A stretch of 64,000 nucleotides of DNA from sequence record MK799832.1. One strand, 5' to 3'. Positions 8,501 through 40,500 of this stretch are shown here, in pieces (position 1 is the stretch's first letter; every line of letters starts with the position of its first letter). The translations under genes and the position numbers were made by a program. The notes under the pieces were generated by a model. It saw only the letters and a program-made list of their open reading frames with translations. It was not told where the DNA came from and searched no databases.

Positions 8501-10189
8501 ATCTCCAGTAAAGGTTGCAGCAGTTCCAACTACACCAAATACTGACTTAACATCAGATAATGAGAAATTTTTATCACTTGTAACAAATCTTGCATCATCC
8601 AATATCCCATTGAAGAGAAGTCTCTCCCCTTTATGGAATTCACCTTCAACATTATAAGCAGTTAGTGCAGTACCTGCTGTTACATTATGCTTAAGATAAC
8701 CCTTTGCACCACTTGACTCACCCTTGATAAAGGTTGACGTGGTAAGTGTGATTGGTTCGTTGAGTGTGATGTCAGTATATGTCTGAACATCAAATAATGA
8801 TAAATCCCATGTATTCAAGTTGGGGAATGCAGTATCATACGAACCACCTTCTAAAACAAAGTCATATACTCTTGCAATACCAATTTCTTTACCTGAGGAG
8901 GTCAATGAATTAACACCAACTCTCTGATCTCTCAAACTCAGAGTCAAAGATGTATTAATACCAATTGTTGCAGATCCACTAACTCTGTTTAAGTTGAGAG
9001 TTGGTCCAAAACCGAAATTAACTGCTTGATCTTCAATAGTTCTTGTAGTTCTTGGCTTTCTAAAGTCAATTAAAGTAGGAGCAATGGTTTCTACCTCATA
9101 TCCCCTTACATAAGCCTTACCAGGAGAGATTTTGTAGATACCAAGGTCGTCACTAGGAACATTACCAGATTGAGTGACTTGAGTCGAATTATAGATACCT
9201 CTATTTCCTTCATTGTTGTTAAGACTATTCTTAACTGAAGTTACAAACTCTTTTACGTAATAATCGCCAGATTCATCAAAAGTTCTACGTGCAAATTCGT
9301 CACCTAAGAAGTTATAATCAGTATTTTTGTTAATAAGACGTAAAACACCGTCTTTTACTTCCGATAATTGAACAAAATTCGACTCATCAAAACTATCAAG
9401 TGGCTTTTTCGACAAAGTTGTCGAAATTTTCAATCTATCGGCACCAGGAGCCGTAAAATTGTTAAATCCTTGGGCATTATCATTAAGTGAAGGGTCAACA
9501 TCAGAAGAAACGATCTCTTCAACAACATCTAAACCTACTCGATAGGATGGGACATTAGAATATTGGTCAAGAATCAGTGTTTGGGCACTAACATTGACAA
9601 AATACCCTCTCAGAAAGTAAACACCCTGAGATAAATTGAATGATGAACCAATAATTGCTGCATTTTGTGGAATTGTTGTTGCAAAACCTTCACCAGCAGA
9701 AATAAAGGTAGATGCATAAGTGATATTCTTACTAGTAAGGAGAACTTCACTGTCTAAAAACGTACTTACATCCTCATCAGAGTTTGCAGAATTCTCATAG
9801 TTCAAATAAAGGGTATATGTGCCTCTTTCGGACTCTTCGTCTGTGATATATGTGACAACTTTTGCGGTTACGCCAGATGTTGCACCAGTAATTGTGGTAC
9901 CAACAATTTGATCGAGATAAATGCCAACAGGAACACCCAAGAATTCGGGCTCAATCTGTACACCATAAAAATTCTGAATATATGTCAGATCACCAGGAAT
10001 TACTTTTGCACCTTCTTTGAAGAAGTGGTTACCCATCTCTTCAACTTGGTTTTGCAGAATAGACTGCAGACCAGTCAGTTCTCTTGCTTGAACAGGAAAA
10101 CCAGGTTTGAATAGAACCTTATAATAATTCGACTGGGGATCAAAGTCGTCAAAATATGGGGCGACATTGAGATTAGTTTCCTGTGGCAT
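2570..10189 (-). CDS. Large virion structural protein, VrlC/DUF4815-like
   Basis: 2539 aa; N-terminus TNLNVAPYFDDFDP...YYKVLFKPGFPVQARELTGLQSILQNQ is typical of this family; lies between gp8 and gp13. Confidence 0.85.
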   Translation of the reverse strand: MPQETNLNVAPYFDDFDPQSNYYKVLFKPGFPVQARELTGLQSILQNQVEEMGNHFFKEGAKVIPGDLTYIQNFYGVQIEPEFLGVPVGIYLDQIVGTTITGATSGVTAKVVTYITDEESERGTYTLYLNYENSANSDEDVSTFLDSEVLLTSKNITYASTFISAGEGFATTIPQNAAIIGSSFNLSQGVYFLRGYFVNVSAQTLILDQYSNVPSYRVGLDVVEEIVSSDVDPSLNDNAQGFNNFTAPGADRLKISTTLSKKPLDSFDESNFVQLSEVKDGVLRLINKNTDYNFLGDEFARRTFDESGDYYVKEFVTSVKNSLNNNEGNRGIYNSTQVTQSGNVPSDDLGIYKISPGKAYVRGYEVETIAPTLIDFRKPRTTRTIEDQAVNFGFGPTLNLNRVSGSATIGINTSLTLSLRDQRVGVNSLTSSGKEIGIARVYDFVLEGGSYDTAFPNLNTWDLSLFDVQTYTDITLNEPITLTTSTFIKGESSGAKGYLKHNVTAGTALTAYNVEGEFHKGERLLFNGILDDARFVTSDKNFSLSDVKSVFGVVGTAATFTGDTIQSRVRNFGSANISAESGSTSLISIPADPGFSFVGIVTVGNIVRYSRPTLDVASFARVTGVGQTNITVEAVTTVSGICNGALPTSVETIQNFELLSTKGVGGPGSGNLANNDTLYSAFPKTNISSVNLIGSELVIRRQYTTSITNNSTPIINTEDKEVFLPFDEERYTLIRSDGSTEVLTEDRFEFTNGSKSLQINGLGSNDTNTKLITTIRKTDVTSKTKLKNVSQDLIINKSSRAASGIGSTTLDDGLTTGNYPYGTRVQDEVISLNTVDVYKIYGIFESDDNSDPVCPNMTLSQLDGITATTNDLIIGEILTGQTSGAKAIYLQKLDDTAIYFTYLNDTTFQNSEVISFESSTVNGVSSNVKLGSKEVTTDFKFFNGQRGTFYDYSRIERRGEAQIPARKLRVYFASSSYDDADEGDITTINSYVGYNYGTEIGGVQDVRVSDIIDVRPRLTDYVVAENVRSPFEFDGRNFADGQNGNLQSSSHIIASDESLTVTYDYYLPRADRVFIDKEGILSVLEGAPDDEPRLPDSLSGVMNIANIFLPAYLFDTADAEIKFIEHKRYQMSDISKLEQRIKNLEYYTSLNQLETNTLNLFVEDANGNNRFKSGIFVDNFTTLEPQDTSIGIRNSIDTERGVLRPSHYTTALNLQLGTTAVTGIGTTSDANQDSNFAEVVGANVKKSGRILTLDYTDETWLQQPFATRAENVTPYLVQFWQGNIELTPEVDVWIDVNELEVNDVMMEGSFRGVAEALGADIRTRRDGSRAGVSPVIWNSWQTVGVDVNTSLSNNQSTQTSSTTRQTSNTNTQGSRRRGQVRTTNTTTQTTNTTTTDNNIRATTSVNLSQNRTGRQFFVNERIDTESLGSRVVRREIINFMRSRNIDVTATSFKPFTRVYSFFDDVDVNNYVTPKLIEIEMIHGTFVVGETVRGRMDDGGSQVTNGSTIPTIDFRVATTNHKYGPFNSPTDVYDSNPYNRDISIPAIYSASSTILNIDTFSLQSQDFPQFSGWISRSMILTGASSGAQARVSNVRLITDRVGTLQASYFVPSPNNPANPIFETGRSSFRLTSSRTNSTIEGLVSTAGESIFYSQGDVDTTQETTLSVRNATVRRADLTQRRNIGDTATSNTITITDTNTDTQSTSTTSVRVIPPRIDPLAQTFLVDDPTGVFITKVDLFFVTKDENIPVLFEIRETNLGTPTDKVLPFSFKSIDPKDVNLSDDGTVATTITLDAPVYLNPEKEYAMVLLSHSTEYRVWISRLGEADVTTLGQEAGQILVTEQPLLGSLFKSQNASVWTPSQYEDLKFNLYVANFKSQGSVSFYNPELPSDLAQIDPNGLTVNSREIRVGLGTTVSDSGLVVGRTVKQLGNGAQGTLVAFAGSVTSNFTITNAGVGYTPSSATFTYTGVALTAVTGKGVNATADITIENGVATAAVVRAGGTGYVVGDVLTPVQVGSVNLGSGIQLSVNELLGNNTLVLDNVQGNFTTNSAYPLYYENSVGFTTELNDVGGNVIPVSPINVTEQGNYIRVFQRNHGLYSNVNRVTISDVRSDLVPNTLSQEYGFDTTTFITIEGLATDFETFENLGVGGTNPGYVKIGDEIISYTGVNGRTLTGVTRGIDNTTIATHSSGELIYKYELNGVSLRRINTSHLLANVVSSELDEAPIGLDYYYIKVQMNANGTNRAPANAAGFPPLYFKENKLAGGPLVKGTYNLPYNLITPKVTTITPQGTNLISQVRTISASSVSGNQESYLDKGYKQVTIFDKNYFDGQRMVASAQNESNLLSGDTFAGNKSFEMQFTLLSGNSRISPVIDLDNASVVYTMNRISRPVTDYVADFRVNGTEDDPNRFTYVSKNVTLENPASSLQVLLDGYVSNYSDIRVFYALNQDVPVEETIFVPFPGYKNIDINGAILDISSNNGTPDKRVPKVDAYVPEPTQDQYKEYKFTIDEVKPFKTFRIKIIGTSTDQSTVPMIRNLRVLSFA

Positions 10190-30751: not shown

Positions 30752-30934
30752 AGATGCGCCGACCTTATGACAATTTTTTTATATATGGAATTTTTTTTAT
30801 ATGGGCAATATCTTAAGGCCGTTTGGGGACCTTTGTAGGTTAGGAAAGGCGCAATTTCTTTTAAGGGGGGGCTCTTTGCGGGATCCCCGCGGTACTCGAA
30901 GGCCCTAAAATACTGTCGAATTTGGCATAGTGTC

Positions 30935-30964
30935 ATTATAACATATAAGGCCACAGAGTGTCAA
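30935..30964 (-). promoter_or_regulatory. Host-like sigma70 promoter with extended -10
   Basis: TTGACA-18 nt-TATAAT with TG-n before the -10; inverted repeat GGCCACAG (30949-30956)/CTGTGGCC (30968-30975) brackets the -35. Confidence 0.8.
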
Positions 30965-30986
30965 GAACTGTGGCCCTGGTATGTTA

Positions 30987-31238
30987 TCACGCGAAGAGAT
31001 AAGTTCCGCGGTCGATGCGAGTAACTCCGCGTCCTTCTTTCACAGCTTTCAGGATAGCCATTTTAGTCATAAAGTTCCCGCAGCATTCAGTCTGCATCCA
31101 TGTGTCCCATGCACGGTTGTTGTTATACAGTGCACGCAGAGTAGGATACAACTCCTGCAGTGTATATGCACCGTTGAGTGATGGGATGATGTCGCGGACC
31201 CAATTGCGGATCTCTTTGTTAATTGCTTTGGTTTCCAT
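30987..31238 (-). CDS. Hypothetical protein, about 83 aa
   Basis: Start moved to METKAINKEIR (31238); the longer track version crosses a repeat-rich non-coding stretch. Confidence 0.65.
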   Translation of the reverse strand: METKAINKEIRNWVRDIIPSLNGAYTLQELYPTLRALYNNNRAWDTWMQTECCGNFMTKMAILKAVKEGRGVTRIDRGTYLFA

Positions 31239-31324
31239 GTGTTGAGTGTGTGGTGAGTAGTGTATACAAAGGGGGTTCATATAGGCCCCCTTATATAAGC
31301 CCTTCATATAGGGCCCTTATGTGA

Positions 31325-31477
31325 TCAGAACTCAAGCGGTTCGAGTGTAGGTTGGGCCTGGGGGATTTGCACCTGTTCGATGTTATCACTGTTCGTAGCG
31401 ATAGCCTCAAGGATGTTCAGGATTTGAGCACCATTGTTACCCTTACGAAGCAGAGAGATCATCAGATTGCGGGACAT
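31325..31477 (-). CDS. Small hypothetical protein, 50 aa
   Basis: Hand-translated MSRNLMISLLRKGNNGAQILNILEAIATNSDNIEQVQIPQAQPTLEPLEF. Confidence 0.65.
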   Translation of the reverse strand: MSRNLMISLLRKGNNGAQILNILEAIATNSDNIEQVQIPQAQPTLEPLEF

Positions 31478-31548
31478 GTGTTTGTGTGAGTTAGTGTGTG
31501 AATTGTGATGAGTTTAATGACATCATCAGGTCATACAGTAAGTGTAAC

Positions 31549-31665
31549 TCAGAGCAGCGCTTTGCGTTTGCGATTGATCTGAGAGGGCAGTACAGTAACT
31601 GTTACTTTCTTGCCATTAGCTTTGAGTTCATCAATGGACTTCAGCAGTTGTTGATAGTTGGTCAT
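31549..31665 (-). CDS. Small hypothetical protein, 38 aa
   Basis: MTNYQQLLKSIDELKANGKKVTVTVLPSQINRKRKALL, starting just downstream of motif copy 1. Confidence 0.6.
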   Translation of the reverse strand: MTNYQQLLKSIDELKANGKKVTVTVLPSQINRKRKALL

Positions 31666-31675
31666 GATGATTGCC

Positions 31676-31713
31676 GTGGTTACACTATAGGAGACCTTTG
31701 GAGGTGAGTAATT
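31676..31713 (-). promoter_or_regulatory. Repeated putative early promoter motif, copy 1
   Basis: AATTACTCACCTCCAAAGGTCTCCTATAGTGTAACCAC. Confidence 0.8.
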
Positions 31714-31768
31714 TTGAAGTCCTCAGAGTGTTACAGATAAGTGATACTGATTTGACACGATTGGGGGG

Positions 31769-31797
31769 TTGACAGAATAGGAAAGGCCTGATAGACT
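31769..31797 (+). promoter_or_regulatory. Plus-strand sigma70-like promoter
   Basis: TTGACA-17 nt-TAGACT, pointing antisense to all surrounding genes. Confidence 0.6.
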
Positions 31798-31983
31798 ACG
31801 GTCTTAGACGACTATAAGATCAGGCATTTAGCAGGGGGTTTATAGGCACTCATGAGATACTAGCGAGACCCTTTGTAGCACATTACAAGACACTTTCGCA
31901 AACATTCGCATACATTTATAAAAGGCTTTAATATACAAAAAAAGGCAAATAGCAGTATTTATTCACCTTTTTGGAGGGTAATT

Positions 31984-32169
31984 TCATTGTAACTTAGTGA
32001 AAGGATTACATGTTGTTCTTGTTACTGGATCACCTAATTGTTCTCTTGTTGGGATGTCATCATGTGGTCTGTAAGCTGATATAATAGGTGATAACAAGAG
32101 AGCTAATCTTTCATCCATTTGTGTATGTCTGAGGTGATAGATTTGATGGCCTTGTGCAGGGCGGTTCAT
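31984..32169 (-). CDS. Hypothetical protein, 61 aa
   Basis: ORF track; coding strand; cassette under motif copy 2. Confidence 0.55.
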   Translation of the reverse strand: MNRPAQGHQIYHLRHTQMDERLALLLSPIISAYRPHDDIPTREQLGDPVTRTTCNPFTKLQ

Positions 32170-32199
32170 GATGAATGAAATAAAGAATGATCTGCAGGT

Positions 32200-32517
32200 T
32201 CATACAGTAGTCATCTCCAGATAATCAGCTTCAGTTTGTAACTTCTTACCATTCCAAATATAGATCATTGGATCATCACAAGCACCATAATCTTCAACCT
32301 CTCCATCATCATTAAAAGTTACATAATCACGCAGTGAAACTACAACCATTGCGGTCTGATTACCAAGATGATTGATACATGCTTCGAGAGTGTAATCATC
32401 AAGATCACCACAAGCTGGAGTCCATTGAATATCAAGATCTTCGTTGCGATCTTCCTCTACAATATAACGGTGCTCATCTACAGAAAAGTCAAAGGCTTCG
32501 ATAGTGGCGAATTCCAT
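32200..32517 (-). CDS. Acidic hypothetical protein, 105 aa
   Basis: ATG 10 nt downstream of motif copy 2. Confidence 0.75.
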   Translation of the reverse strand: MEFATIEAFDFSVDEHRYIVEEDRNEDLDIQWTPACGDLDDYTLEACINHLGNQTAMVVVSLRDYVTFNDDGEVEDYGACDDPMIYIWNGKKLQTEADYLEMTTV

Positions 32518-32526
32518 GCGATTTAA

Positions 32527-32564
32527 GTGGTTGTACTATAGTGGACGTTTAGAGGTGAGTAACT
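32527..32564 (-). promoter_or_regulatory. Repeated motif, copy 2
   Basis: AGTTACTCACCTCTAAACGTCCACTATAGTACAACCAC. Confidence 0.8.
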
Positions 32565-32727
32565 TTGTAGAGTTATGATTGACTTACTTTATTGATAACA
32601 ACTCGATGAGCAGGGTATCTCGCTTCAACTAATTGTCTTATAAAGTCTCTATCAGAACGATCAGATTGAAGAGAAAACTCATGCCTTCTCCCCTTGTCAT
32701 CATTCCAATAACCAGTGCAATTGTAGA

Positions 32728-32982
32728 TCATTTGAAGAAATTAAGACGGTGGAGTTCAGTATAAGCGAAACGACGCATATTGTCATCCTCTGTTGTATGA
32801 TACAAATTGATCATACGTTGACAATAATCAGACCTCTTTGTAATCGGTGTGATACTTTGGCGTGAAGTGTAGCCAATGTCATTGTTACCATTGGTGCGAA
32901 CTTTAGGCCGGCCAAAGTTACCAGTGACATTACCAGTTGTTCTCAGTTTGGGCTTGATCTTTGAGAGATTTGAATCAGTCAT
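32728..32982 (-). CDS. Basic hypothetical protein, about 84 aa
   Basis: MTDSNLSKIKPKLRTTGNVTGNFGRPK; start placed at the ATG overlapping the upstream stop (ATGACTGA). Confidence 0.7.
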   Translation of the reverse strand: MTDSNLSKIKPKLRTTGNVTGNFGRPKVRTNGNNDIGYTSRQSITPITKRSDYCQRMINLYHTTEDDNMRRFAYTELHRLNFFK

Positions 32983-33112
32983 GAACTTCAGAGTTGTCAT
33001 CAATTACAGTTACAATTTGTCCGTCCTGAGTTAGAATTTCATACTGAGTTTGAAATGATGAAATATCAGCCTTTCCAACAATAATAGCAGTGGAGAGAAG
33101 AAATTCAATCAT
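32975..33112 (-). CDS. Small hypothetical protein, 45 aa, hydrophobic N-terminus
   Basis: Hand-translated MIEFLLSTAIIVGKADISSFQTQYEILTQDGQIVTVIDDNSEVHD. Confidence 0.6.
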   Translation of the reverse strand: MIEFLLSTAIIVGKADISSFQTQYEILTQDGQIVTVIDDNSEVHD

Positions 33113-33172
33113 CAGTTAAACCTTTGTACAAAAAGAACAATAAAAAAATGAGAAGAATAAAACCTATGGAGA

Positions 33173-33424
33173 TCATAACTCCCATAGCATTTCATTCATC
33201 TCATTCACATCAATGTTAGGATCATCCCAACGAACACCATCACCAGTGGTGAAGTCTCCGATGTTGTTCATACAAAGAATGAAACGATCCCATACACTTT
33301 CCAAACCCTCACGGTAAGTTACACATGCCTTGGCAGTGTTGTAGAGAAACTCATCATTGCCGATCCAAAGAGCAGCGTTCCAAGTTTCATAATTAGACCA
33401 ACCGTTGTAGGTAGAATCAGACAT
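33173..33424 (-). CDS. Hypothetical phage protein with YNGWxNYETWN motif
   Basis: YNGWSNYETWNAALW is a motif I recognise from small phage early proteins; function unknown. Confidence 0.8.
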   Translation of the reverse strand: MSDSTYNGWSNYETWNAALWIGNDEFLYNTAKACVTYREGLESVWDRFILCMNNIGDFTTGDGVRWDDPNIDVNEMNEMLWEL

Positions 33425-33523
33425 AGTAGAAAAAGAAATAAAGGTGGTGATTAAGTGTGGTTCAGAGAAACAAGTCAGAGAAGCAATCTAGAAGAGAGAA
33501 GTCTGAGCGAGAAGTCTGAACCC

Positions 33524-33557
33524 TTACACTATAGGTGACCTTTCGAGGTGAGTAATT
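33524..33557 (-). promoter_or_regulatory. Repeated motif, copy 3
   Basis: AATTACTCACCTCGAAAGGTCACCTATAGTGTAA. Confidence 0.8.
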
Positions 33558-33562
33558 CTGTG

Positions 33563-33766
33563 TCAGACCAAATCGTACTTGATTGATTTCACACAATAGC
33601 CAACATCATCAGCAATAATATCCATTAAATGCTCCTCATCTTTGGCATCCCATAATTCATCCTTTGTCTCATCAATGAGGCATTCTTGAGTAAATTCACC
33701 TGGAGGACCAAATTCCTCATCATTCCAATCAAACTCAATTTCAGTCACTTGATAAAACTTTTTCAT
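33563..33766 (-). CDS. Acidic hypothetical protein, about 67 aa
   Basis: MKKFYQVTEIEFDWND; the ATG overlaps the upstream stop (ATGA). Confidence 0.7.
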   Translation of the reverse strand: MKKFYQVTEIEFDWNDEEFGPPGEFTQECLIDETKDELWDAKDEEHLMDIIADDVGYCVKSIKYDLV

Positions 33767-33906
33767 TGACAATCAGGATGGGGTTGAGGTAGTGTGGCAC
33801 ATGCATTTTGATGTGCATTGTTGATCGATTGTGTGTCCCTTATCGCTAACAACACATTGATAAAAACAACAGCGATAAAGGGAAAAATAAAGAGATGAAT
33901 CTTCAT
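33763..33906 (-). CDS. Small membrane protein, 47 aa
   Basis: MKIHLFIFPFIAVVFINVLLAIRD...CATLPQPHPDCQ; start/stop overlaps with both neighbours. Confidence 0.65.
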   Translation of the reverse strand: MKIHLFIFPFIAVVFINVLLAIRDTQSINNAHQNACATLPQPHPDCQ

Positions 33907-34064
33907 CACATGCCATTCATAAAGTCATGAATTGCTTCCAAATACTCTTCTTTGGTCTCAAATGTGCGACCGTAGATAGTCTTTGGAAATTCGCCAAGTT
34001 TGGCGGGTTTGTTGACAGGATCTTTGCCCTGTGACTTGATTTGGTCGATGTAAGTGTTTCTCAT
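33906..34064 (-). CDS. Small hypothetical protein, 52 aa
   Basis: MRNTYIDQIKSQGKDPVNKPAKLGEFPKTIYGRTFETKEEYLEAIHDFMNGM; ATG directly abuts TATAGT of motif copy 4. Confidence 0.6.
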   Translation of the reverse strand: MRNTYIDQIKSQGKDPVNKPAKLGEFPKTIYGRTFETKEEYLEAIHDFMNGM

Positions 34065-34094
34065 ACTATAGTGGACCTTTCGAGGTGAGTAATT
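34065..34094 (-). promoter_or_regulatory. Repeated motif, copy 4
   Basis: AATTACTCACCTCGAAAGGTCCACTATAGT. Confidence 0.8.
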
Positions 34095-34099
34095 CTGTG

Positions 34100-34300
34100 T
34101 CAGTCTAATCTCTTGAAATGAACTGAATTAAACTGACCTGATTTGTTCTCTAATGTAATCTTAGTGTACCATGGTTGAATGTCAACACTCTCGACAACAT
34201 AGCGATGACCAACTATCAAATGAGATGGATAATCACTCGATGCCCATAACAACTGTTCATGAGTTGCTCCCTTAAATTCTACTATATCACCTGACTGCAT
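34100..34300 (-). CDS. Hypothetical protein, 66 aa
   Basis: ORF track; stop 5 nt from motif copy 4. Confidence 0.7.
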   Translation of the reverse strand: MQSGDIVEFKGATHEQLLWASSDYPSHLIVGHRYVVESVDIQPWYTKITLENKSGQFNSVHFKRLD

Positions 34301-34550
34301 TTATCATATCCTCCCACACTTCTTCGCCCATCATATCACTAATCTCCTCTTGCAAGTCAGTTTCATCATAATCTTTCATATTTGCTTCTATTTGTTCTGC
34401 TGCCCACTGACATAGAGTCTTGAGATCCATACCATCAACGATTAGCCAGGCATAGTCATTCTTTAGGTTATCAAGTTGTTCAGGTGTGAGTGTCATTGGA
34501 TCAGTGTAATGTGCGACAAAAGACATAAAAAAAGAGGGTAAAACCCTCAA
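34287..34550 (-). CDS. Acidic hypothetical protein (true start probably internal)
   Basis: ORF track; MTLTPEQLDNLKNDYAWLIVDGMD is a plausible real N-terminus. Confidence 0.65.
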   Translation of the reverse strand: MRVLPSFFMSFVAHYTDPMTLTPEQLDNLKNDYAWLIVDGMDLKTLCQWAAEQIEANMKDYDETDLQEEISDMMGEEVWEDMINAVR

Positions 34551-34891
34551 GCAAAAACATAACCAGAATGAAAATCTTCAACGTTGTAGACTTTACCAGT
34601 CACAGAAGATTCACCAATGAACTTGCGAACATACCAGAGAAAGTCTTTCTGGAAAACACCTTCACCAGCGATACAATACTCTTCGCAAAGTGCATTGAGT
34701 CGTGATTTAGTGGTGTTAGATTGCCAACCACCGTCAAAGATAGTCAGGCTAGTGTCATCAACCAGAGCAATTTTATTGCCGTGGAGATAAACAGTAGAAA
34801 CACCCATGTTAGTGACAACTTCAGTGTTTCCAGATTTCCAGTTCTTGTTGCCGTTGATGGCTTCAATCATCTGGGATTCAATCTTACGCAT
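34547..34891 (-). CDS. Hypothetical protein, 114 aa
   Basis: MRKIESQMIEAI...VYLHGNKIA...SNTTKSRLNAL; first gene after motif copy 5. Confidence 0.8.
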   Translation of the reverse strand: MRKIESQMIEAINGNKNWKSGNTEVVTNMGVSTVYLHGNKIALVDDTSLTIFDGGWQSNTTKSRLNALCEEYCIAGEGVFQKDFLWYVRKFIGESSVTGKVYNVEDFHSGYVFA

Positions 34892-34906
34892 GTGGTTTAG
34901 TGGTTC

Positions 34907-34940
34907 TTACACTATAGTGGACATTTCGAGGTGAGTAATT
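34907..34940 (-). promoter_or_regulatory. Repeated motif, copy 5
   Basis: AATTACTCACCTCGAAATGTCCACTATAGTGTAA. Confidence 0.8.
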
Positions 34941-34943
34941 CTG

Positions 34944-35561
34944 TCACTCAGTAATTTGTTCGACTTGAGTATTATCACCACCAAAGTTAGTGACTTCATG
35001 CAACTTACTTCCAGTAATGGTACCGCCAACCATCAATGAAATTGTGGAGATAAGTACAATCCAGAAACGAAGGTGAAAGTTTTTCTCTTGAGTAAACTTA
35101 GACCCATATTTGTAACCAACAAAGGCACCACCAAACATACCAACAAGAGGTGCCAATGCGTAGGCGACAAATCCACCAATACCAATGGCAGCGAGTATCA
35201 ACAATCCACCAACATCAGCACCAGAGAGTGAAGAACCCTCACCACTGTTAGTGTTGTTGTAACTGACACTATGTGTGCCACTAGATGTTACACCGCCACT
35301 GAATGAGTTGTTGATAGATTGTTGAGTTTGTTCGGCAGCACTTGTTCTATTTGCTCTTGTTTCTTCACGTTTTTGTTTCTCTTTCTCTCCCCATATCTGA
35401 GAGTCAATACATTTAACACCAGAAATCTTGGCACCAGGATAACGAGCTTCAAATATTTCCTTGGCACCAGCTGCGGTGTTTGGCCCCTCACAAGTGACAT
35501 AATGACCTGAATATCCATTCACAGAGTGAATACGACCTTGCCAAGTGTGAACGTTAGCCAT
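34944..35561 (-). CDS. Hypothetical membrane protein, 205 aa
   Basis: Soluble N-terminus, Ser/Gly-rich linker, hydrophobic Gly-rich segments LLILAAIGIGGFVAYALAPLVGMFGG and FWIVLISTISLMVGG. Confidence 0.75.
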   Translation of the reverse strand: MANVHTWQGRIHSVNGYSGHYVTCEGPNTAAGAKEIFEARYPGAKISGVKCIDSQIWGEKEKQKREETRANRTSAAEQTQQSINNSFSGGVTSSGTHSVSYNNTNSGEGSSLSGADVGGLLILAAIGIGGFVAYALAPLVGMFGGAFVGYKYGSKFTQEKNFHLRFWIVLISTISLMVGGTITGSKLHEVTNFGGDNTQVEQITE

Positions 35562-35576
35562 GATAAAAGAATTGCG

Positions 35577-35614
35577 TTGGTTGTACTATAAGAGACCTTT
35601 GAAGGTGAGTAATT
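35577..35614 (-). promoter_or_regulatory. Repeated motif, copy 6
   Basis: AATTACTCACCTTCAAAGGTCTCTTATAGTACAACCAA. Confidence 0.8.
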
Positions 35615-35742
35615 CTAAAGAGTGACAAGTGGCCTTACATTGTATCAAGGTAACCACACCAAAACATGATACAAATGCCACACATTATGGGCCTTACATG
35701 AGTGTTGTAACCACCACAGAAATTACACTCAATGCCCATCAA

Positions 35743-35925
35743 TCAAAAAGGATTAGTCCATTTGTGGTGTTGTTGTTTCGTGATTCTACCGTCATCAAGT
35801 AAACTATCAACCACATTTAGGAAGACAGCCCACTTCATGTCGCGAGTGAAAGTAATACCTTCCTCTTTACAATGAGTGTTCACAGTATTACGAACAACGC
35901 GTTGAACTTCAGTTTTTGTCATCAT
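35743..35925 (-). CDS. Hypothetical protein, 60 aa
   Basis: ORF track; ATGA overlap with the upstream ORF. Confidence 0.7.
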   Translation of the reverse strand: MMTKTEVQRVVRNTVNTHCKEEGITFTRDMKWAVFLNVVDSLLDDGRITKQQHHKWTNPF

Positions 35926-36086
35926 TTGATAGATTCGAGAATAGAACGACGAGCCTCATAGGCTTGAAATTGTGAATTGAATGTGGCGATCTTAGTAAAG
36001 TCTTCCCTCCAATAAAGAGCCCATTTGTGTGACCCTATCACACCTTTAGCGATGATAGGGTTATCAATACCGAGTGGATAAGTCAT
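35922..36086 (-). CDS. Small hypothetical protein, 54 aa
   Basis: Hand-translated MTYPLGIDNPIIAKGVIGSHKWALYWREDFTKIATFNSQFQAYEARRSILESIK; first gene after motif copy 7. Confidence 0.65.
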   Translation of the reverse strand: MTYPLGIDNPIIAKGVIGSHKWALYWREDFTKIATFNSQFQAYEARRSILESIK

Positions 36087-36095
36087 GCTAGTTCA

Positions 36096-36133
36096 GTGGT
36101 TACACTATAGGGGACATTTCAAGGTGAGTAATT
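36096..36133 (-). promoter_or_regulatory. Repeated motif, copy 7
   Basis: AATTACTCACCTTGAAATGTCCCCTATAGTGTAACCAC. Confidence 0.8.
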
Positions 36134-36286
36134 CTGTGTTAGACTAATTAAGAGATTTTGTTGACGTTGTGAATCAGAATCTTCCTTGAATGGTTCATAC
36201 TCAGGATGAGCATTTTCCCACCGTTTCAGATCATCATTCCATTCCTCTTGTTTTAACACATTGTCCCAAAAATTGTTGTAGTTCAT
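36119..36286 (-). CDS. Small hypothetical protein, 55 aa, reads into motif copy 7
   Basis: MNYNNFWDNVLKQEEWNDDLKRWENAHPEYEPF...; ATGA overlap upstream. Confidence 0.5.
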   Translation of the reverse strand: MNYNNFWDNVLKQEEWNDDLKRWENAHPEYEPFKEDSDSQRQQNLLISLTQNYSP

Positions 36287-36486
36287 TCTTCAACAACAGA
36301 TTGGATTACAAATTGTGGTTGATTTCGATTACAAGTTGCAATTGCTTCTTCTTTACTAGAAGCAATGTAACCTAGACAATCTCTCATTGTCCAACCATTA
36401 GCACGATGATGTTCACCGTAGATCAGAAACTTAGATTCTTTCATGTTATCAACCTCCGTAGACTTCTTCAGCCATAGGTGTATCAC
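36283..36486 (-). CDS. Hypothetical protein (true start probably MKESKF)
   Basis: ORF track; coding strand. Confidence 0.65.
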   Translation of the reverse strand: MIHLWLKKSTEVDNMKESKFLIYGEHHRANGWTMRDCLGYIASSKEEAIATCNRNQPQFVIQSVVEE

Positions 36487-36676
36487 TCATGCGATCGAGG
36501 TGATCCCAAAGTGTGTTTTTTTCACCAAACATTTCTTGGAAGAGATCAAGATCTTGACGATCATATTGATCTTTAACAATCCAAATCTCTTGTTCAATCC
36601 ATGCAAGTTCTGCACGAGCTTTATCTAGTTTCTTACGAAGTTCGTAAAGCTTTTGGTTTCTTTCTGTGAGTGTCAT
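36449..36676 (-). CDS. Hypothetical protein, 75 aa, coiled-coil-like
   Basis: First gene after motif copy 8. Confidence 0.7.
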   Translation of the reverse strand: MTLTERNQKLYELRKKLDKARAELAWIEQEIWIVKDQYDRQDLDLFQEMFGEKNTLWDHLDRMSDTPMAEEVYGG

Positions 36677-36685
36677 AATGATTCA

Positions 36686-36723
36686 GTGGTTACACTATAG
36701 TGGACATTTCGAGGTGAGTAATT
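36686..36723 (-). promoter_or_regulatory. Repeated motif, copy 8 (consensus)
   Basis: AATTACTCACCTCGAAATGTCCACTATAGTGTAACCAC. Confidence 0.8.
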
Positions 36724-36726
36724 CTG

Positions 36727-37317
36727 TTAGCCCAACAATACCTGAGGAAAGTATGGAGTCAGGTCAGAATCTACAATCTTATGTTCACAACTCACAAATT
36801 TCTTTCGTGATACATTCTTGACATAGATCAGGTGGTTAATGTCAATATCTTTGTAATCTTGTGGTCCACGTTTACGAATAAGACCAAAGGCTTCGTTCTC
36901 TTCGCGAGTGGAAACAACGACCTTTGAAAGTTTATCAATGTCTGTCAAAAAGTGAGTGATAAGATCATAAGAACGATCTTCCACAAACTTATCATAATGA
37001 TATGCAAATATAAACTTTGAACCACTACGAACTCCGCCGAAGTGTTCTTTAGTCAAACTGTGTCCGCCTTTGACTTTCATATCAATTACACTGGACAAAG
37101 TTTTGTCAGGATATTCACTCCACTTGACAAAAGCTTGTGGTGTCAACAATGCACCAGTGTCATCGATTTTATGAGAACTAGCCCAACAAATACCACCAGA
37201 AAGATCCTCTACAACCTTGAACATAGTCTCACGGGTGTAGATATTGACCTGCTCATCTGTCAAGGACATAATCAGTTTGAGCTGATTAGTTAGGAATCTT
37301 TTAGTGGTGGCAGTCAT
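36727..37317 (-). CDS. Hypothetical protein, 196 aa
   Basis: Sole gene between motif copies 9 and 8. Confidence 0.8.
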   Translation of the reverse strand: MTATTKRFLTNQLKLIMSLTDEQVNIYTRETMFKVVEDLSGGICWASSHKIDDTGALLTPQAFVKWSEYPDKTLSSVIDMKVKGGHSLTKEHFGGVRSGSKFIFAYHYDKFVEDRSYDLITHFLTDIDKLSKVVVSTREENEAFGLIRKRGPQDYKDIDINHLIYVKNVSRKKFVSCEHKIVDSDLTPYFPQVLLG

Positions 37318-37326
37318 CGGTTTAAT

Positions 37327-37362
37327 GTGGTTACTTAAGTGGACATTTAGAGGTGAGTAATT
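37327..37362 (-). promoter_or_regulatory. Repeated motif, copy 9
   Basis: AATTACTCACCTCTAAATGTCCACTTAAGTAACCAC. Confidence 0.75.
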
Positions 37363-37566
37363 CTATTTGAGCTCAATTCGGTCAATCAAGACCATACCAA
37401 GGTCAAAATATAGATCATCATCAATGTCACCAAGCTTTTCACGGAGAGCATCACCAACCATGTCGGTCATCATCTCCATATAACGCTCATCTTCATAGAT
37501 TTGATTGATAATATCCTCCTTCAATGCGTCGGCAAGTTTGGATACACATTTTGCAGAAAGTGCCAT
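37363..37566 (-). CDS. Acidic hypothetical protein, 67 aa
   Basis: Stop TAG directly abuts motif copy 9. Confidence 0.7.
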   Translation of the reverse strand: MALSAKCVSKLADALKEDIINQIYEDERYMEMMTDMVGDALREKLGDIDDDLYFDLGMVLIDRIELK

Positions 37567-37647
37567 GTCAGTTGTTAGTGAGAATGTTGATGATTGTGAT
37601 AAACATTACACCACACATGATGTAATAGATGAAACGAAAAATAGCCA

Positions 37648-37974
37648 TTATCGCATGTAAAGATAACCACCTGCCCAATCGGCACGTTGATAGCACTGTT
37701 CGCGGGATTCAATCCTCAGAAGATTGTAACGGACCCCTTTGGCTGGTGCTTTGAATGATGCAGGTTTGTAAACATCACCAGTCTTCTTATCAACAAAAGC
37801 ATGAACACTGCGGGAACCTGATTCGGTCTCCATGATTAGTTTGTGATACTTACGACCAGACTCAATGTAGAACTTATAGGCGCGGTCATAATTATGACAA
37901 CGAAGGTAATCTTCCATCAACACACTGCAAAGAATTTTGGCGTGTTTTTCAACAATTTGTGTGGGAGTGATCAT
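37648..37974 (-). CDS. Hypothetical phage protein with KPASFKAPAK motif
   Basis: GRKYHKL...VHAFVDKKTGDVYKPASFKAPAKGVRYNL is a motif I recognise from small phage proteins; function unknown. Confidence 0.8.
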   Translation of the reverse strand: MITPTQIVEKHAKILCSVLMEDYLRCHNYDRAYKFYIESGRKYHKLIMETESGSRSVHAFVDKKTGDVYKPASFKAPAKGVRYNLLRIESREQCYQRADWAGGYLYMR

Positions 37975-37982
37975 AACTTTGT

Positions 37983-38020
37983 GTGGTTACACTACTGTGG
38001 ACTTTTGGAGGTGAGTAATT
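37983..38020 (-). promoter_or_regulatory. Repeated motif, copy 10
   Basis: AATTACTCACCTCCAAAAGTCCACAGTAGTGTAACCAC. Confidence 0.75.
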
Positions 38021-38135
38021 CTGTCAACCGACGATTGATAGTGGCTACTTCTACACTACTGTGTGGGATTAGATATTTTTGATTTACCCACACAATCTTA
38101 CGAGTGTCAATATCTGATGCGATGTTGTAAGTCAT
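37992..38135 (-). CDS. Small hypothetical protein, 47 aa, reads into motif copy 10
   Basis: MTYNIASDIDTRKIVWVNQKYLIPHSSVEVATINRRLTELLTSKSPQ; ATGA overlap upstream. Confidence 0.5.
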   Translation of the reverse strand: MTYNIASDIDTRKIVWVNQKYLIPHSSVEVATINRRLTELLTSKSPQ

Positions 38136-38452
38136 TCAAGTTCCTCAATAGGGTTGGCGTAAAGATCATTCTCTGTGGTCACATCAGTGAACACATCTTC
38201 ATCATCATCAGAAAATAACAGATACAAAATCTCATCATTATCCTTGACATTCCACTCTTGATAGAGAGAAATAATGTCACCAGATACCCTATCTTTATTT
38301 TTCTTCTTCTCTAAAGATTTACCTAGTTTCTTGATTCGTTTCTCATATACAACTTGCTGATCATTGGCAAGATATTCAACTCTATCAAGATTGAAGATAA
38401 ACTTATTACCTTCAATCTCAAAGGTTTCGGAATTTGCGGTATCGAAATTCAT
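38132..38452 (-). CDS. Hypothetical protein, 106 aa
   Basis: ORF track; preceded by a sigma70-like promoter. Confidence 0.7.
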   Translation of the reverse strand: MNFDTANSETFEIEGNKFIFNLDRVEYLANDQQVVYEKRIKKLGKSLEKKKNKDRVSGDIISLYQEWNVKDNDEILYLLFSDDDEDVFTDVTTENDLYANPIEELE

Positions 38453-38473
38453 AATAATAATGTGGTTAATTCA

Positions 38474-38501
38474 ATTGTATCCTATAAACTACAGATGTCA
38501 A
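38474..38501 (-). promoter_or_regulatory. Host-like sigma70 promoter
   Basis: TTGACA-16 nt-TACAAT, overlapping the upstream stop. Confidence 0.55.
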
Positions 38502-38707
38502 TCTGCAGTGACAGTGGTGGCCTTGCCTACGTTAGATGGGCCTTTCCAGACCAAACCATCTTCCTCCCACTTAGCGATAAATGCACGACGAAGCATCATC
38601 AACTCATCATATCGTGATTGTTGGGAAGAAGTATAGTTGAAGTTTTGTGCCCTCCAAGTCTTACGCAGTTCTTGAAGTTCACGAATGATTTGAGAAGAAT
38701 TGTTCAT
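38498..38707 (-). CDS. Hypothetical protein, 69 aa
   Basis: ORF track; coding strand. Confidence 0.7.
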   Translation of the reverse strand: MNNSSQIIRELQELRKTWRAQNFNYTSSQQSRYDELMMLRRAFIAKWEEDGLVWKGPSNVGKATTVTAD

Positions 38708-38748
38708 GATGTTGTTCTTAGATTAAGTAAAATAAGTTAAGGTTTATG

Positions 38749-39006
38749 TCATTCAATACGAGTGATTACAACGTAATTGGAATCATCATCAAATTTAGGG
38801 GGATGGATCGTCCTCGTCACTTTGTAGCCCGTTTTCTTCAATGCACTAGGAATATCTGGGCCCCTGTAGTCTTCACAATAATCATCACAGCGAAGAATGA
38901 ATGACATTCCAATATCTAGTTGTTGCCATGGGTATTTCTGTTTACGACCCTTACTAGAAGCATAAAATAGTTCTTCAATTTGATGGGGGGTGTAGATTTC
39001 GGACAT
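38749..39006 (-). CDS. Hypothetical protein, 85 aa
   Basis: First gene after motif copy 11; contains KYPWQQLDIGMSF. Confidence 0.7.
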   Translation of the reverse strand: MSEIYTPHQIEELFYASSKGRKQKYPWQQLDIGMSFILRCDDYCEDYRGPDIPSALKKTGYKVTRTIHPPKFDDDSNYVVITRIE

Positions 39007-39014
39007 GATTAGAC

Positions 39015-39052
39015 GTGATTACAATAGAGTGGACGTTTGGAGGTGAGTAATT
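39015..39052 (-). promoter_or_regulatory. Repeated motif, copy 11
   Basis: AATTACTCACCTCCAAACGTCCACTCTATTGTAATCAC; overlaps the upstream TAA. Confidence 0.75.
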
Positions 39053-39602
39053 ATGAACCGAGACAGAATTGTCTGAGTTTCCGAGTAATAGAGGGTGCAG
39101 TGATGTCTTCCGACACAACATATGCCTCTAATTCTTCCAGAATAGTATCTTCATGAAGACCCTTGGCTTTCAGTCGCGAACGTAACTGAGCAAGACGTTC
39201 TTCATCATAAGATGGAGACAAAGACAAGAATTTAGCAAGTTCTTCTTCATTGAACATCGTTGTAGTTTTACCATCAGCAATATAACCACTTGCACAATCT
39301 TGGATTACATGATGTGCCTCATGTCGCAGTGTGTTGTAGTCATTCTCAGTCCATTTGTATTGTTTATTTGAACCTGGAATCATCTTGTCTTGACAGATAA
39401 CTAACATTCCAGAATAAGGATAGTAAATACCATCCATTTTCTTTCTGTCATTACAATGATTGAGATGATTGACCAAAGTAACTACACCAAGGTCTTGCAA
39501 AGTGTTCCACAATTCATTATGGTCATCATGAATGTCAGCCTTGGCAATACCAGGATTGAGAACTGTGGTTGCTGCGAGAAGAGAAAGGAATAGTTTTTTC
39601 AT
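39051..39602 (-). CDS. Putative exported zincin-like metallopeptidase
   Basis: Signal-peptide-like MKKLFLSLLAATTVLNPGIAKA; TLRHEAHHVIQDC (HExxH) with a distal EELEAY. Confidence 0.6.
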   Translation of the reverse strand: MKKLFLSLLAATTVLNPGIAKADIHDDHNELWNTLQDLGVVTLVNHLNHCNDRKKMDGIYYPYSGMLVICQDKMIPGSNKQYKWTENDYNTLRHEAHHVIQDCASGYIADGKTTTMFNEEELAKFLSLSPSYDEERLAQLRSRLKAKGLHEDTILEELEAYVVSEDITAPSITRKLRQFCLGS

Positions 39603-39607
39603 GTTAA

Positions 39608-39859
39608 TCAGAAGTCAGGTCCAAGAATTTGCATAATATCAGCAGGATCAGTACTGCCGAGATAAGTCTCAGTAAAGAGAATTGCTAGTTCTCTACTACC
39701 AAACTCAATCTCTACATTATCCCAGATCCTGTCATTATATACTTTGACAGTGATAGGTTGAACACCCGATTCTTCAATTGTTTCAGAAATATTAAAATAA
39801 ATGTCATCACCATCACTACAATCAAAGTCATAAGTGACTTTTACAGTTGACATAATCAT
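39608..39859 (-). CDS. Acidic hypothetical protein, about 81 aa
   Basis: ORF track; coupled to the upstream ORF. Confidence 0.65.
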   Translation of the reverse strand: MIMSTVKVTYDFDCSDGDDIYFNISETIEESGVQPITVKVYNDRIWDNVEIEFGSRELAILFTETYLGSTDPADIMQILGPDF

Positions 39860-40095
39860 TTTGATTCCTCCAGAGTAATAGTACGATACTGATTGATAAT
39901 AGTCTCTAGATTATCAATACAATATTGCATTGTGGCACGAGAGTAACCAGTAGCATAAGGATAACCCTGATCAGGATTATTCAATGCATCATGGGATACA
40001 TTCACTCCATCTTGAAGACTTTCGATGATTGTGATTAGTTTGGTGTCGATGTTCATGATAGGTAATAAAAAACCGCTGTAGGGGATCAGAGACAC
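39856..40095 (-). CDS. Hypothetical protein (true start probably MNIDTK)
   Basis: ORF track; contains GYPYATGYSRATM. Confidence 0.65.
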   Translation of the reverse strand: MSLIPYSGFLLPIMNIDTKLITIIESLQDGVNVSHDALNNPDQGYPYATGYSRATMQYCIDNLETIINQYRTITLEESK

Positions 40096-40112
40096 CTTAC
40101 AGCGGAGAATAG

Positions 40113-40322
40113 TCAGACAGTGGTCTTAGGACCAAACTCACGTTGATAAGAATCTTTCACATACTCAACAGTTTGTTGAATGAAAGGCTTGACATAATCA
40201 ACGAGTTGTTTTACATCTTCAATGAGCTTGTTAGTCTCATACTGATGAATCTCCCAACGTACTTTGATGTCGGCAAGATACTGTTGACGAGTAATAAGAA
40301 CTTGAGGAGTGGTTTGAGTCAT
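40113..40322 (-). CDS. Hypothetical protein, 69 aa
   Basis: First gene after motif copy 12. Confidence 0.7.
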   Translation of the reverse strand: MTQTTPQVLITRQQYLADIKVRWEIHQYETNKLIEDVKQLVDYVKPFIQQTVEYVKDSYQREFGPKTTV

Positions 40323-40328
40323 AGAAGT

Positions 40329-40369
40329 GTGGTCTCTACACTATAGGGGACATTTGGAGGTGAGTAATT
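40329..40369 (-). promoter_or_regulatory. Repeated motif, copy 12
   Basis: AATTACTCACCTCCAAATGTCCCCTATAGTGTAGAGACCAC. Confidence 0.8.
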
Positions 40370-40372
40370 CTG

Positions 40373-40500
40373 TCACCTCTTCTTTTTCTTGAGTTTGTTA
40401 ATCAATGTCATCGCAGATTGTCTGTTACGACATACTTTAACCACCACACCATTGTGAACAAACACAAGTTTAGTTGTTGAACCAACCAGTGGAATTGCAG
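40373..40500 (-). pseudogene. 5'-truncated small ORF cut by the strand-switch junction
   Basis: Frame ...AIPLVGSTTKLVFVHNGVVVKVCRNRQSAMTLINKLKKKKR* ends 3 nt before motif copy 12 like the other cassette genes, but has no ATG at its 5' end. Confidence 0.55.

Follow-up and report, generated by a model that had tools for sequence, protein, structure and literature searches.

The 64,000-nucleotide window analysed here corresponds, at 100% identity, to positions 1-64000 of the genome of Synechococcus phage S-B05 (MK799832.1) and carries an array of small genes in which a fixed-spacing element of about 45 nt is repeated twelve times. This element is one dialect of a wider family of cyanomyovirus promoter cassettes with few cultured carriers, and the most interesting result of the comparison is that a lineage-specific box is placed on a shared core. 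We consider it probable that the element is a lineage-specific promoter cassette of early type, the core of which would be read by the host RNA polymerase and the box by a phage-specific factor. S-B05 is a T4-like cyanomyovirus (Kyanoviridae) of 208,857 bp whose isolation host is Synechococcus sp. MW02.

The search pattern was TTACTCACCTNNAAANGTC. The 19-nt core of the element, TTACTCACCT-NN-AAA-N-GTC, has 12 exact matches in the window, every one on the minus strand between 31693 and 40367 (low coordinates 31693, 32544, 33537, 34074, 34920, 35594, 36113, 36703, 37342, 38000, 39032 and 40349), compared with a mean of 0.14 and a maximum of 1 in dinucleotide-preserving shuffles. A position-weight scan, with a matrix built from the element copies themselves, was bimodal, the 12 copies scoring 46-71 bits and all other sites of the window 8 bits or less. 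These results bear out a preliminary description of this DNA, which had reported twelve co-oriented copies about 0.5-1.3 kb apart, with TTACTCACCT, AAA and GTC invariant and with constant internal spacing; the start-to-start distances are 519-1317 bp. The description gave no strand; its consensus is written in the sense of the array genes, which are encoded on the minus strand. The copies, numbered leftward, are as follows.

40325-40375, minus strand: copy 1, the first of the leftward array, with the sequence TGACAGAA-TTACTCACCT-CC-AAA-T-GTC-CCC-TATAGT-GTAGAGACCAC; ATG 17 nt past the hexamer, gene 40113-40322
39008-39058, minus strand: copy 2, hexamer TCTATT; ATG at 16 nt, gene 38749-39006; the TAA of the upstream gene overlaps the AA directly 5' of TTACTC
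37976-38026, minus strand: copy 3, hexamer AGTAGT preceded by TTGACAGAA; ATG at 16 nt, gene 37648-37974 (DUF7717)
37318-37368, minus strand: copy 4, hexamer TTAAGT followed by a 1-nt deletion; ATG at 15 nt, gene 36727-37317
36679-36729, minus strand: copy 5, the nearest to the consensus; ATG 17 nt past TATAGT, gene 36449-36676
36089-36139, minus strand: copy 6; ATG at 17 nt, gene 35922-36086; contains the TGA stop of the upstream gene 36119-36286 (CCT-TGA-AAT)
35570-35620, minus strand: copy 7; ATG at 23 nt, gene 34944-35561
34896-34946, minus strand: copy 8; ATG at 19 nt, gene 34547-34891 (Pfam family Kyano_Gp96)
34050-34100, minus strand: copy 9; the annotated ATG of gene 33906-34064 adjoins TATAGT (offset 0)
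33513-33563, minus strand: copy 10; ATG at 33424, beyond an insert of about 90 nt
32520-32570, minus strand: copy 11; ATG at 17 nt, gene 32200-32517
31669-31719, minus strand: copy 12; ATG at 18 nt, opening an unannotated open reading frame (ORF) of 38 amino acids, 31549-31665

The full element reads (TG)ACAGAA-TTACTCACCT-YN-AAA-N-GTC-YMC-TATAGT-GTAACCAC, and likeness between copies is limited to about 35-65 nt, the flanks being unrelated. Two more exact copies lie outside the window, on the plus strand at genome positions 156039 and 156967, ahead of genes for a DUF6267 protein and a helicase, so that the whole genome holds 14. Of the window copies, nine have TATAGT as hexamer and three have variants of it, whereas the box is invariant in 14/14 genomic copies. 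No match to the full element was found in 596 Gb of cellular genomes (one genome for each of 185,579 bacterial and archaeal species); the 19-base version had six single matches, in metagenome-assembled genomes of Bacteroidia and Spirochaetales, which is the chance level, and none in cyanobacteria. A further, decayed copy lies beyond copy 12 and is probably non-functional.

30828-30846, minus strand: decayed copy, TTCCTAACCTACAAAGGTC, with 2 mismatches and no hexamer downstream

All 14 genomic copies are on the coding strand. In 10/12 window copies the ATG opening the next ORF lies 15-23 nt past the hexamer, and in 8/12 the upstream stop codon either precedes the box by 3-13 nt or falls within the element. 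The copies had been described as intergenic, which is not strictly so, since one upstream gene ends inside the element (36119) and several stop codons lie in the ACAGAA part. Since the upstream stop adjoins or enters the element, there is no room for a terminator, and a terminator scan found no terminator-like site adjoining any window copy. The geometry is ATTACT-N17-TATAGT followed by a conserved C-A about 7 nt downstream, and the leaders after the element are short, G-poor and CA-rich, without a Shine-Dalgarno sequence. The insert behind copy 10 (33424-33512, minus strand), which contains imperfect CAGACTTCTC-type repeats, makes the sole long leader in the array. The consensus sites of NtcA (GTA-N8-TAC), the Pho box, HLR1/RpaB, CRP, LexA and -35/-10 elements of the extracytoplasmic function (ECF) type, compared by eye rather than by formal scan, do not agree with the invariant positions. 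As an alternative -10, TAAAGT, which lies upstream of the core, was considered and rejected, its second position being variable.

Promoters of the host sigma-70 type form a separate class in the same genome. The preliminary description had placed TTGACA promoters at about 30959 and 38496, and both were recovered, on the minus strand, together with another perfect one.

30964-30935, minus strand: sigma-70 promoter (contrast class), TTGACA-N17/18-TATAAT, 12/12 hexamer positions
30516-30488, minus strand: sigma-70 promoter (contrast class), TTGACA-N17/18-TATAAT, 12/12 hexamer positions
38501-38474, minus strand: near-perfect sigma-70 promoter inside the array (contrast class), TTGACA-16-TACAAT

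The two perfect promoters lie just downstream of the array, ahead of the genes leading to purM, and further sigma-70 promoters occur in the small-gene region at 150-173 kb. Their leaders are 20-35 nt long, with GGAG in all three that are visible. A sigma-70 consensus scan requiring at least 4/6 positions in the -35 hexamer called no copy of the element. The S-B05 genome has, on these predictions, two distinct kinds of transcription unit. A 570-bp stretch that has no annotated gene (30752-31324) contains or adjoins the two perfect promoters; its G+C content is 0.43, compared with about 0.38 for the phage.

BLAST with the consensus returned only the five records of the S-B05 group (two of S-B05, and RN05-S, RB11-B and S-B43), with 8-14 element places each, and the distant SynMITS9220M01. 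The latter carries 12 copies of TTACTCACCT-CT-AAAG-T-GT-CCC-TATAGT in the syntenic region from helicase to purM; its GT is shifted by one base relative to S-B05, and the distance from box to hexamer is equal. In S-SM2 the same proximal half, TAAAG-C-GT-CCC-TATAGT-RT-RAGCA, follows a wholly different distal block, GGGGGGTCGCC, the box being GGGGGGTCGC. The exchange can be seen in front of orthologous genes, since the DUF6267 orthologues carry the same core with TTACTCACC in S-B05 and SynMITS9220M01 and with GGGGGGTCG in S-SM2. The S-SM2 block GGGGGGTCGCC can also pair with the core GCGTCCC in a hairpin of 3+3 bp with a T-T mismatch (-10.6 kcal/mol; locus L012, 10595-10625, 11529-11560, 12001-12030 and 12566-12600), and no such hairpin is present in the TTACTCACC dialect.

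The syntenic slots lie at 36-50 kb in SynMITS9220M01, 47-57 kb in S-SM2 and 43-54 kb in Syn9. The Syn9 slot contains another repeat, AAGGTGnCAC, about 25 nt and then CGTGTATTCTATAAGAGTCAAAGG, with 17-21 nt from hexamer to ATG and CA-rich leaders. This repeat was reconstructed here and may correspond to the published Syn9 motif. With up to 3 mismatches allowed, it was not found in the window, and TTACTCACCT-NN-AAA is no more frequent than by chance in the 68 kb of Syn9 examined; the S-B05 element is no match to the repeat of the equivalent Syn9 region, the comparison being with the reconstructed repeat only. A full-text literature search found no paper quoting the published Syn9 motif, or TTACTCACC in a cyanophage context, the citing papers giving no sequence. 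The Syn9 type was found in 117 phage records and the S-B05 type in five records and SynMITS9220M01. Among the isolates examined, the three types (S-B05/SynMITS9220M01, S-SM2 and Syn9) are mutually exclusive, and the same host, Synechococcus MW02, is listed for S-B05, of the TTACTCACC type, and for S-MS29 and QB2, of the Syn9 type. The Syn9 repeat also has a box, AAGTGTCCAC or AGGTGGCACA, about 35 nt upstream of the hexamer (loci L009/L010, 46304-46361, 48572-48629, 51014-51071 and 53010-53067), which resembles the core AAAGTGTCCC that adjoins the hexamer in S-B05-type elements; the two may be a shared binding site at differing distance.

Core and boxes are abundant in contigs of uncultured cyanophages. 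In scans of IMG/VR for the box with TATAGT, the SynMITS9220M01 spacing was found in 90 stretches and the S-B05 spacing in 37; these hold 526 copies (391 unique, up to 14 per stretch), all on one strand in 125 of 126 stretches. For 336 of 376 unique copies the first base of a TAnnnT hexamer falls at element positions 20-24, and at the expected start C is found in 64% and A in 73%. A scan for the proximal core alone (TAAAG-N-GT-NCC-TATAGT-RT) gave at least 120 stretches. Among the core matches listed, the 11-12 nt at the -35 position are highly diverse, as in ACTTGGATCCT, GGGGGGACGC, CTCCGGGGCCT, ACTGAGGCTT, GTTAGTAACCT, GTTAGGATCGT, ATAGCTCACCT and CAGGGAGCCC. In the 46 stretches with three or more copies among these matches, each box is on average 93% identical to the consensus of its own stretch, the consensus boxes of different stretches are 47% alike, and at least 29 distinct consensus boxes are present.

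These data support a model in which each copy would be the promoter of a pre-replicative (early-type) small-gene array. With a cassette every 0.5-1.3 kb and hardly any terminators, each promoter would add a co-directional read-through transcript to those begun upstream, giving a nested set. The core, AAA-(N)GT-YYC-TATAGT-RTRA with C-A about 7 nt past the hexamer, is common to many cyanomyovirus lineages and, because it is constant across them, would be read by the host RNA polymerase. A box of 10-12 bp (TTACTCACCT in the S-B05 and SynMITS9220M01 lineages) takes the -35 position, 12 bp before the hexamer, and would be read by a co-evolving phage factor, since it is uniform within a genome, kept between S-B05 and SynMITS9220M01 and replaced elsewhere. 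The invariance of the box in S-B05, where the hexamer varies, speaks for selection on the box and against a mere homogenisation of the entire cassette. The reader of the box could be an activator that replaces -35 recognition, as in the MotA-box promoters of T4, or alternatively an early-made phage repressor that shuts the class off. As to the parts of this model, the promoter reading is well supported by the anatomy of the copies. Early timing is plausible by analogy, from the hyperplastic small-gene position, the separate class of host-like promoters and the findings reported for Syn9 and P-TIM40. The need for a special factor is also plausible, judging from the pattern of box conservation. 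The preliminary description had proposed a phage-specific immediate-early promoter class that needs an activator or an alternative sigma factor. The phage-specific part of this proposal is supported by the position on the coding strand, the fixed distance to ATG, the -10-like hexamer, the separation from TTGACA promoters and the absence from cellular genomes. The non-sigma-70 part does not follow from the S-B05 sequence alone, since ATTACT-N17-TATAGT has the canonical sigma-70 geometry.

Several observations weigh against this model. ATTACT and TTGACA agree at no more than 3 of 6 positions. For an immediate-early class, a phage activator would have to enter with the virion, like the T4 Alt protein. 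No candidate for a box-binding protein emerged from domain scans of the large S-B05 proteins and the array proteins, and among ten array proteins, which are ORFans or members of Kyanoviridae families of unknown function (Kyano_Gp96, DUF7717 and DUF6267), no DNA-binding domain was seen. The uniformity of the box within a genome could in principle come from gene conversion. The start codons raise a further difficulty. When the first ATG of an ORF of 30 codons or more is taken for each unique IMG/VR copy, it directly follows the hexamer (offset 0) in 102 of 378 (27%), and flush starts are also found at the S-B05 copy 34074 and at the DUF6267 genes of SynMITS9220M01 and S-SM2. With TATAGT as a -10 and a start 7 nt downstream, the flush codon would lie outside the transcript and the gene would depend on read-through. 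Such read-through from upstream cassettes is possible, as nearly all offset-0 copies have a cassette within 2.5 kb upstream; the proportion (76/81, compared with 142/156 of the other copies) does not discriminate.

In an alternative geometry, the 5' end would lie at the end of TATAG, as in the T7 group (CACTATAG), and the reader would be a polymerase or factor outside sigma-70, possibly delivered with the virion. The mRNAs of genes with flush codons would in that case be leaderless, and leaders of 16-27 nt would precede the other genes. The ATG offsets are bimodal, with a class at 0, almost none at 1-13 nt and the remainder at 14-25 nt; the offset-0 ATG is in frame with a long ORF in 102/103 copies, and about 59 of 109 offset-0 copies (a set that includes SynMITS9220M01) have no second ATG within 30 nt. 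The DUF6267 gene starts at offset 18 in S-B05, with the N-terminus MTSTHIEHPED, and at offset 0 in SynMITS9220M01 (MKNTHIEHPED) and S-SM2 (MKNTHLQHPED). CACTATAG itself is present in 6/12 S-B05 copies, and a long, sharply conserved and lineage-specific promoter resembles those of single-subunit polymerases. On the other side, no RNA-polymerase domain was found with Pfam and PHROGs in 10 large, poorly annotated S-B05 proteins, a scan that left out two giant structural proteins of the window and in which the proteins assigned to families were mostly tail fibres or peptidases. T4-like phages are not known to carry a gene for such a polymerase. Conservation reaches about -27, past the range of T7-type promoters, the gap at 1-13 nt can be explained by a constraint on the 3' part of the element (RTRA.CA), which leaves one ATG-compatible slot only, and read-through could serve the offset-0 copies. 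We regard this geometry as improbable. Flush starts were seen on the minus strand of the window at 34062-34064, at 9902, 10835, 11573 and 13295 of locus L008, and at 9688, 10611 and 11545 of the S-SM2 locus (L012). The N-termini of these genes tend to M-[KSNT]-[NT]-T, because the downstream consensus of the element, ATGARCAACAC, extends into the coding sequence. A promoter is dispensed with altogether if the element works in RNA, by marking sites at which polycistronic transcripts are processed or their translation begins. The fixed short distance to start codons would suit this, as would the upstream genes that end at the element, which imply transcription through it from upstream promoters. 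Against it, no conserved fold was shared by six copies from three phages (z-scores -1.7 to +1.9), the predicted structures vary from copy to copy, Rfam has no match within the window, and the conservation is one of sequence, with no covariation. Conservation is highest 18-28 nt upstream of the hexamer, in a part that is swapped between lineages, which a host ribosome or RNase should not tolerate, and a role of this kind appears very unlikely.

The element could also consist of ordinary strong host sigma-70 promoters similar to the early promoters of T4, with no phage reader and with the extra conservation due to polymerase contacts or to recombination between copies, of the kind proposed here by analogy with mobile promoter-early stem-loop cassettes. 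This is consistent with the canonical 17-nt spacer, the TAnnnT hexamer and the C-A at the expected start. Early promoters of T4 likewise have a consensus beyond -35 and -10 (PMC2988021), and ATTACT-N17-TATAGT resembles TTTACW-N17-TAYWAT, the promoter of the promoter-early stem-loop cassettes (PeSLs) of T4/PST (PMC4122927), ATTACT agreeing with the T4/PST early -35 consensus TTTACW at 5/6 positions. However, the box is wholly changed between lineages on one host genus, which the conserved region 4 of sigma should not tolerate, conservation within S-B05 is stronger in the box than in the hexamer, promoters with a perfect TTGACA form a class apart, and the stem-loop of a PeSL does not adjoin the element. 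The part played by recombination can be judged from the differences between S-B05, RB11-B and RN05-S, several of which are indels or cassette swaps bounded at an element. The comparison with RB11-B and RN05-S revealed 10 distinct events, five of them with a boundary no more than 17 nt from an element. Copy 6 and its upstream gene are missing in both relatives; copy 7 and its gene are replaced in RB11-B by a different cassette, the boundaries lying 4 and 9 nt from copies 7 and 8, and the swapped segment (35624-34955) is thus bounded by two consecutive elements. These flush boundaries, with the uniformity of the box within a genome, would also be expected if the element were a recombination substrate at the borders of mobile cassettes, or an operator only, without promoter activity of its own. 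Yet 6 of 20 boundaries fall at elements while roughly a third of gene junctions carry one, so that breakpoints appear no commoner at elements than at gene junctions generally. In addition, neither co-orientation with genes nor a tight distance to ATG is necessary for recombination, and the -10-like hexamer is conserved across lineages. We judge the substrate or operator explanation to have very little probability and the ordinary sigma-70 explanation to be rather unlikely.

The lineage-specific promoter cassette can be extended into a more specific and tentative proposal, which we think rather doubtful as a whole. The box would be a dialect, with at least 29 versions on one core, read by a phage protein that is either an activator delivered with the virion or an early-made silencer, which would also act on co-infecting relatives; a start at the end of TATAG may in addition leave a quarter of the genes leaderless.

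The array that the cassettes divide lies between purM and baseplate-wedge genes on one side and plus-strand tail and terminase genes on the other. Most of its genes are ORFans, and some are members of Kyanoviridae families that are conserved but of unknown function. A single convincing intrinsic terminator was found within it.

31325-40322, minus strand: small-gene array, 28 annotated small genes and a few unannotated ones
34534-34548, minus strand: intrinsic terminator, GAGGGTTTTACCCTC followed by a T-run, 3' of the Kyano_Gp96 gene and with no element adjoining

The 38-amino-acid ORF behind copy 12 is not annotated in GenBank, and the element ahead of its start argues that it is a real gene; several more unannotated short ORFs lie at 31477-31984 and 33763-33909. 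All 14 copies can be assigned to one co-oriented array, because in RB11-B and RN05-S the array continues into the helicase and DUF6267 genes and 118 kb are inverted in S-B05. In these two relatives the genes that follow the array directly are those for an HNH endonuclease, the helicase and DUF6267. The 118-kb segment of the S-B05 record is bounded by 102-bp inverted repeats (40399-40500 and genome positions 158813-158914), which have 1 mismatch, and it has the opposite orientation in RB11-B and RN05-S. Another S-B05 record, MH920638, of 40,500 bp, terminates exactly at the inverted repeat. The inversion could be an assembly join or a genuine one. Genes for HNH homing endonucleases (genome 158283-158765; RN05-S locus L140, 2557-3060) account for two indels of the array, with breakpoints that are not at elements. 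In S-B43 (locus L141, 8290-9740) a truncated UDP-glucose 4-epimerase gene adjoins small array genes, which suggests another rearrangement or an assembly join in that record.

Much of the marine Synechococcus and Prochlorococcus is killed by T4-like cyanophages, which are without the T4 proteins for reprogramming the host RNA polymerase. With its constant core and swappable box, the element offers a concrete handle on how the first genes of these phages are turned on and off. Different boxes on one core are represented by three cultured groups in our count (the S-B05 group, SynMITS9220M01 and S-SM2), and core and boxes are abundant in uncultured contigs. If a phage factor reads the box, it would constitute a new specificity system for bacterial RNA polymerase and could be a mechanism of competition between co-infecting phages. 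In ORFan-rich regions the element marks real gene starts, unannotated ones included, and it could serve as a compact portable promoter for the engineering of marine cyanobacteria and their phages.

Among the closest known systems is that of Syn9 and P-TIM40, in which a novel element reportedly drives the early genes and host-like promoters the middle genes (Doron and colleagues, 2016). That system reportedly shares with S-B05 a conserved, non-host-like motif before small genes of the hyperplastic region and a separate class of host-like sigma-70 promoters. The Syn9 repeat found here is like the S-B05 element in its syntenic slot, its hexamer-to-ATG distance of 17-21 nt and its CA-rich leaders, and differs from it in sequence. 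T4-like cyanophages have three temporal classes of genes, and are without motA, asiA and T4-type middle promoters (PMC5780444). The early promoters of T4 are similar in their many highly conserved copies, in a consensus beyond -35 and -10 and in driving small early genes (PMC2988021), with a -35 of the TTTACW type and a 17-nt spacer (PMC4122927); they match the host sigma-70 consensus excellently, whereas the S-B05-type box is non-host-like and variable between lineages. In T4 middle promoters the MotA box, of 9-10 bp, lies 12 +/- 1 bp upstream of a sigma-70-type -10 and replaces the -35 (PMC2988021), and the S-B05 box TTACTCACCT ends 12 bp before TATAGT, at the same spacing. The box is, however, unrelated to TGCTT or (a/t)(a/t)(a/t)TGCTTtA, the S-B05 class is presumed to be early and not middle, and cyanophages are reported to be without motA and asiA (PMC5780444), genes that were not searched for in S-B05.

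PeSLs (Arbiol 2010; Comeau 2014, PMC4122927) are also repeated, conserved promoter cassettes between small ORFs of the hyperplastic region, and close relatives differ there by indels and cassette swaps, as they do here. The S-B05 element differs from them in having no stem-loop or terminator half, the upstream genes ending at or inside it, and in an association with breakpoints that appears not to exceed that of gene junctions generally. With the promoters of the T7 group the element has in common a long, sharply conserved and phage-specific sequence, the 8-mer CACTATAG, and positions determining specificity that change between related phages. It departs from them in that a scan of large S-B05 ORFs revealed no gene for a polymerase of this type and in that its variable part lies at -16 to -27 and not at -8 to -12.

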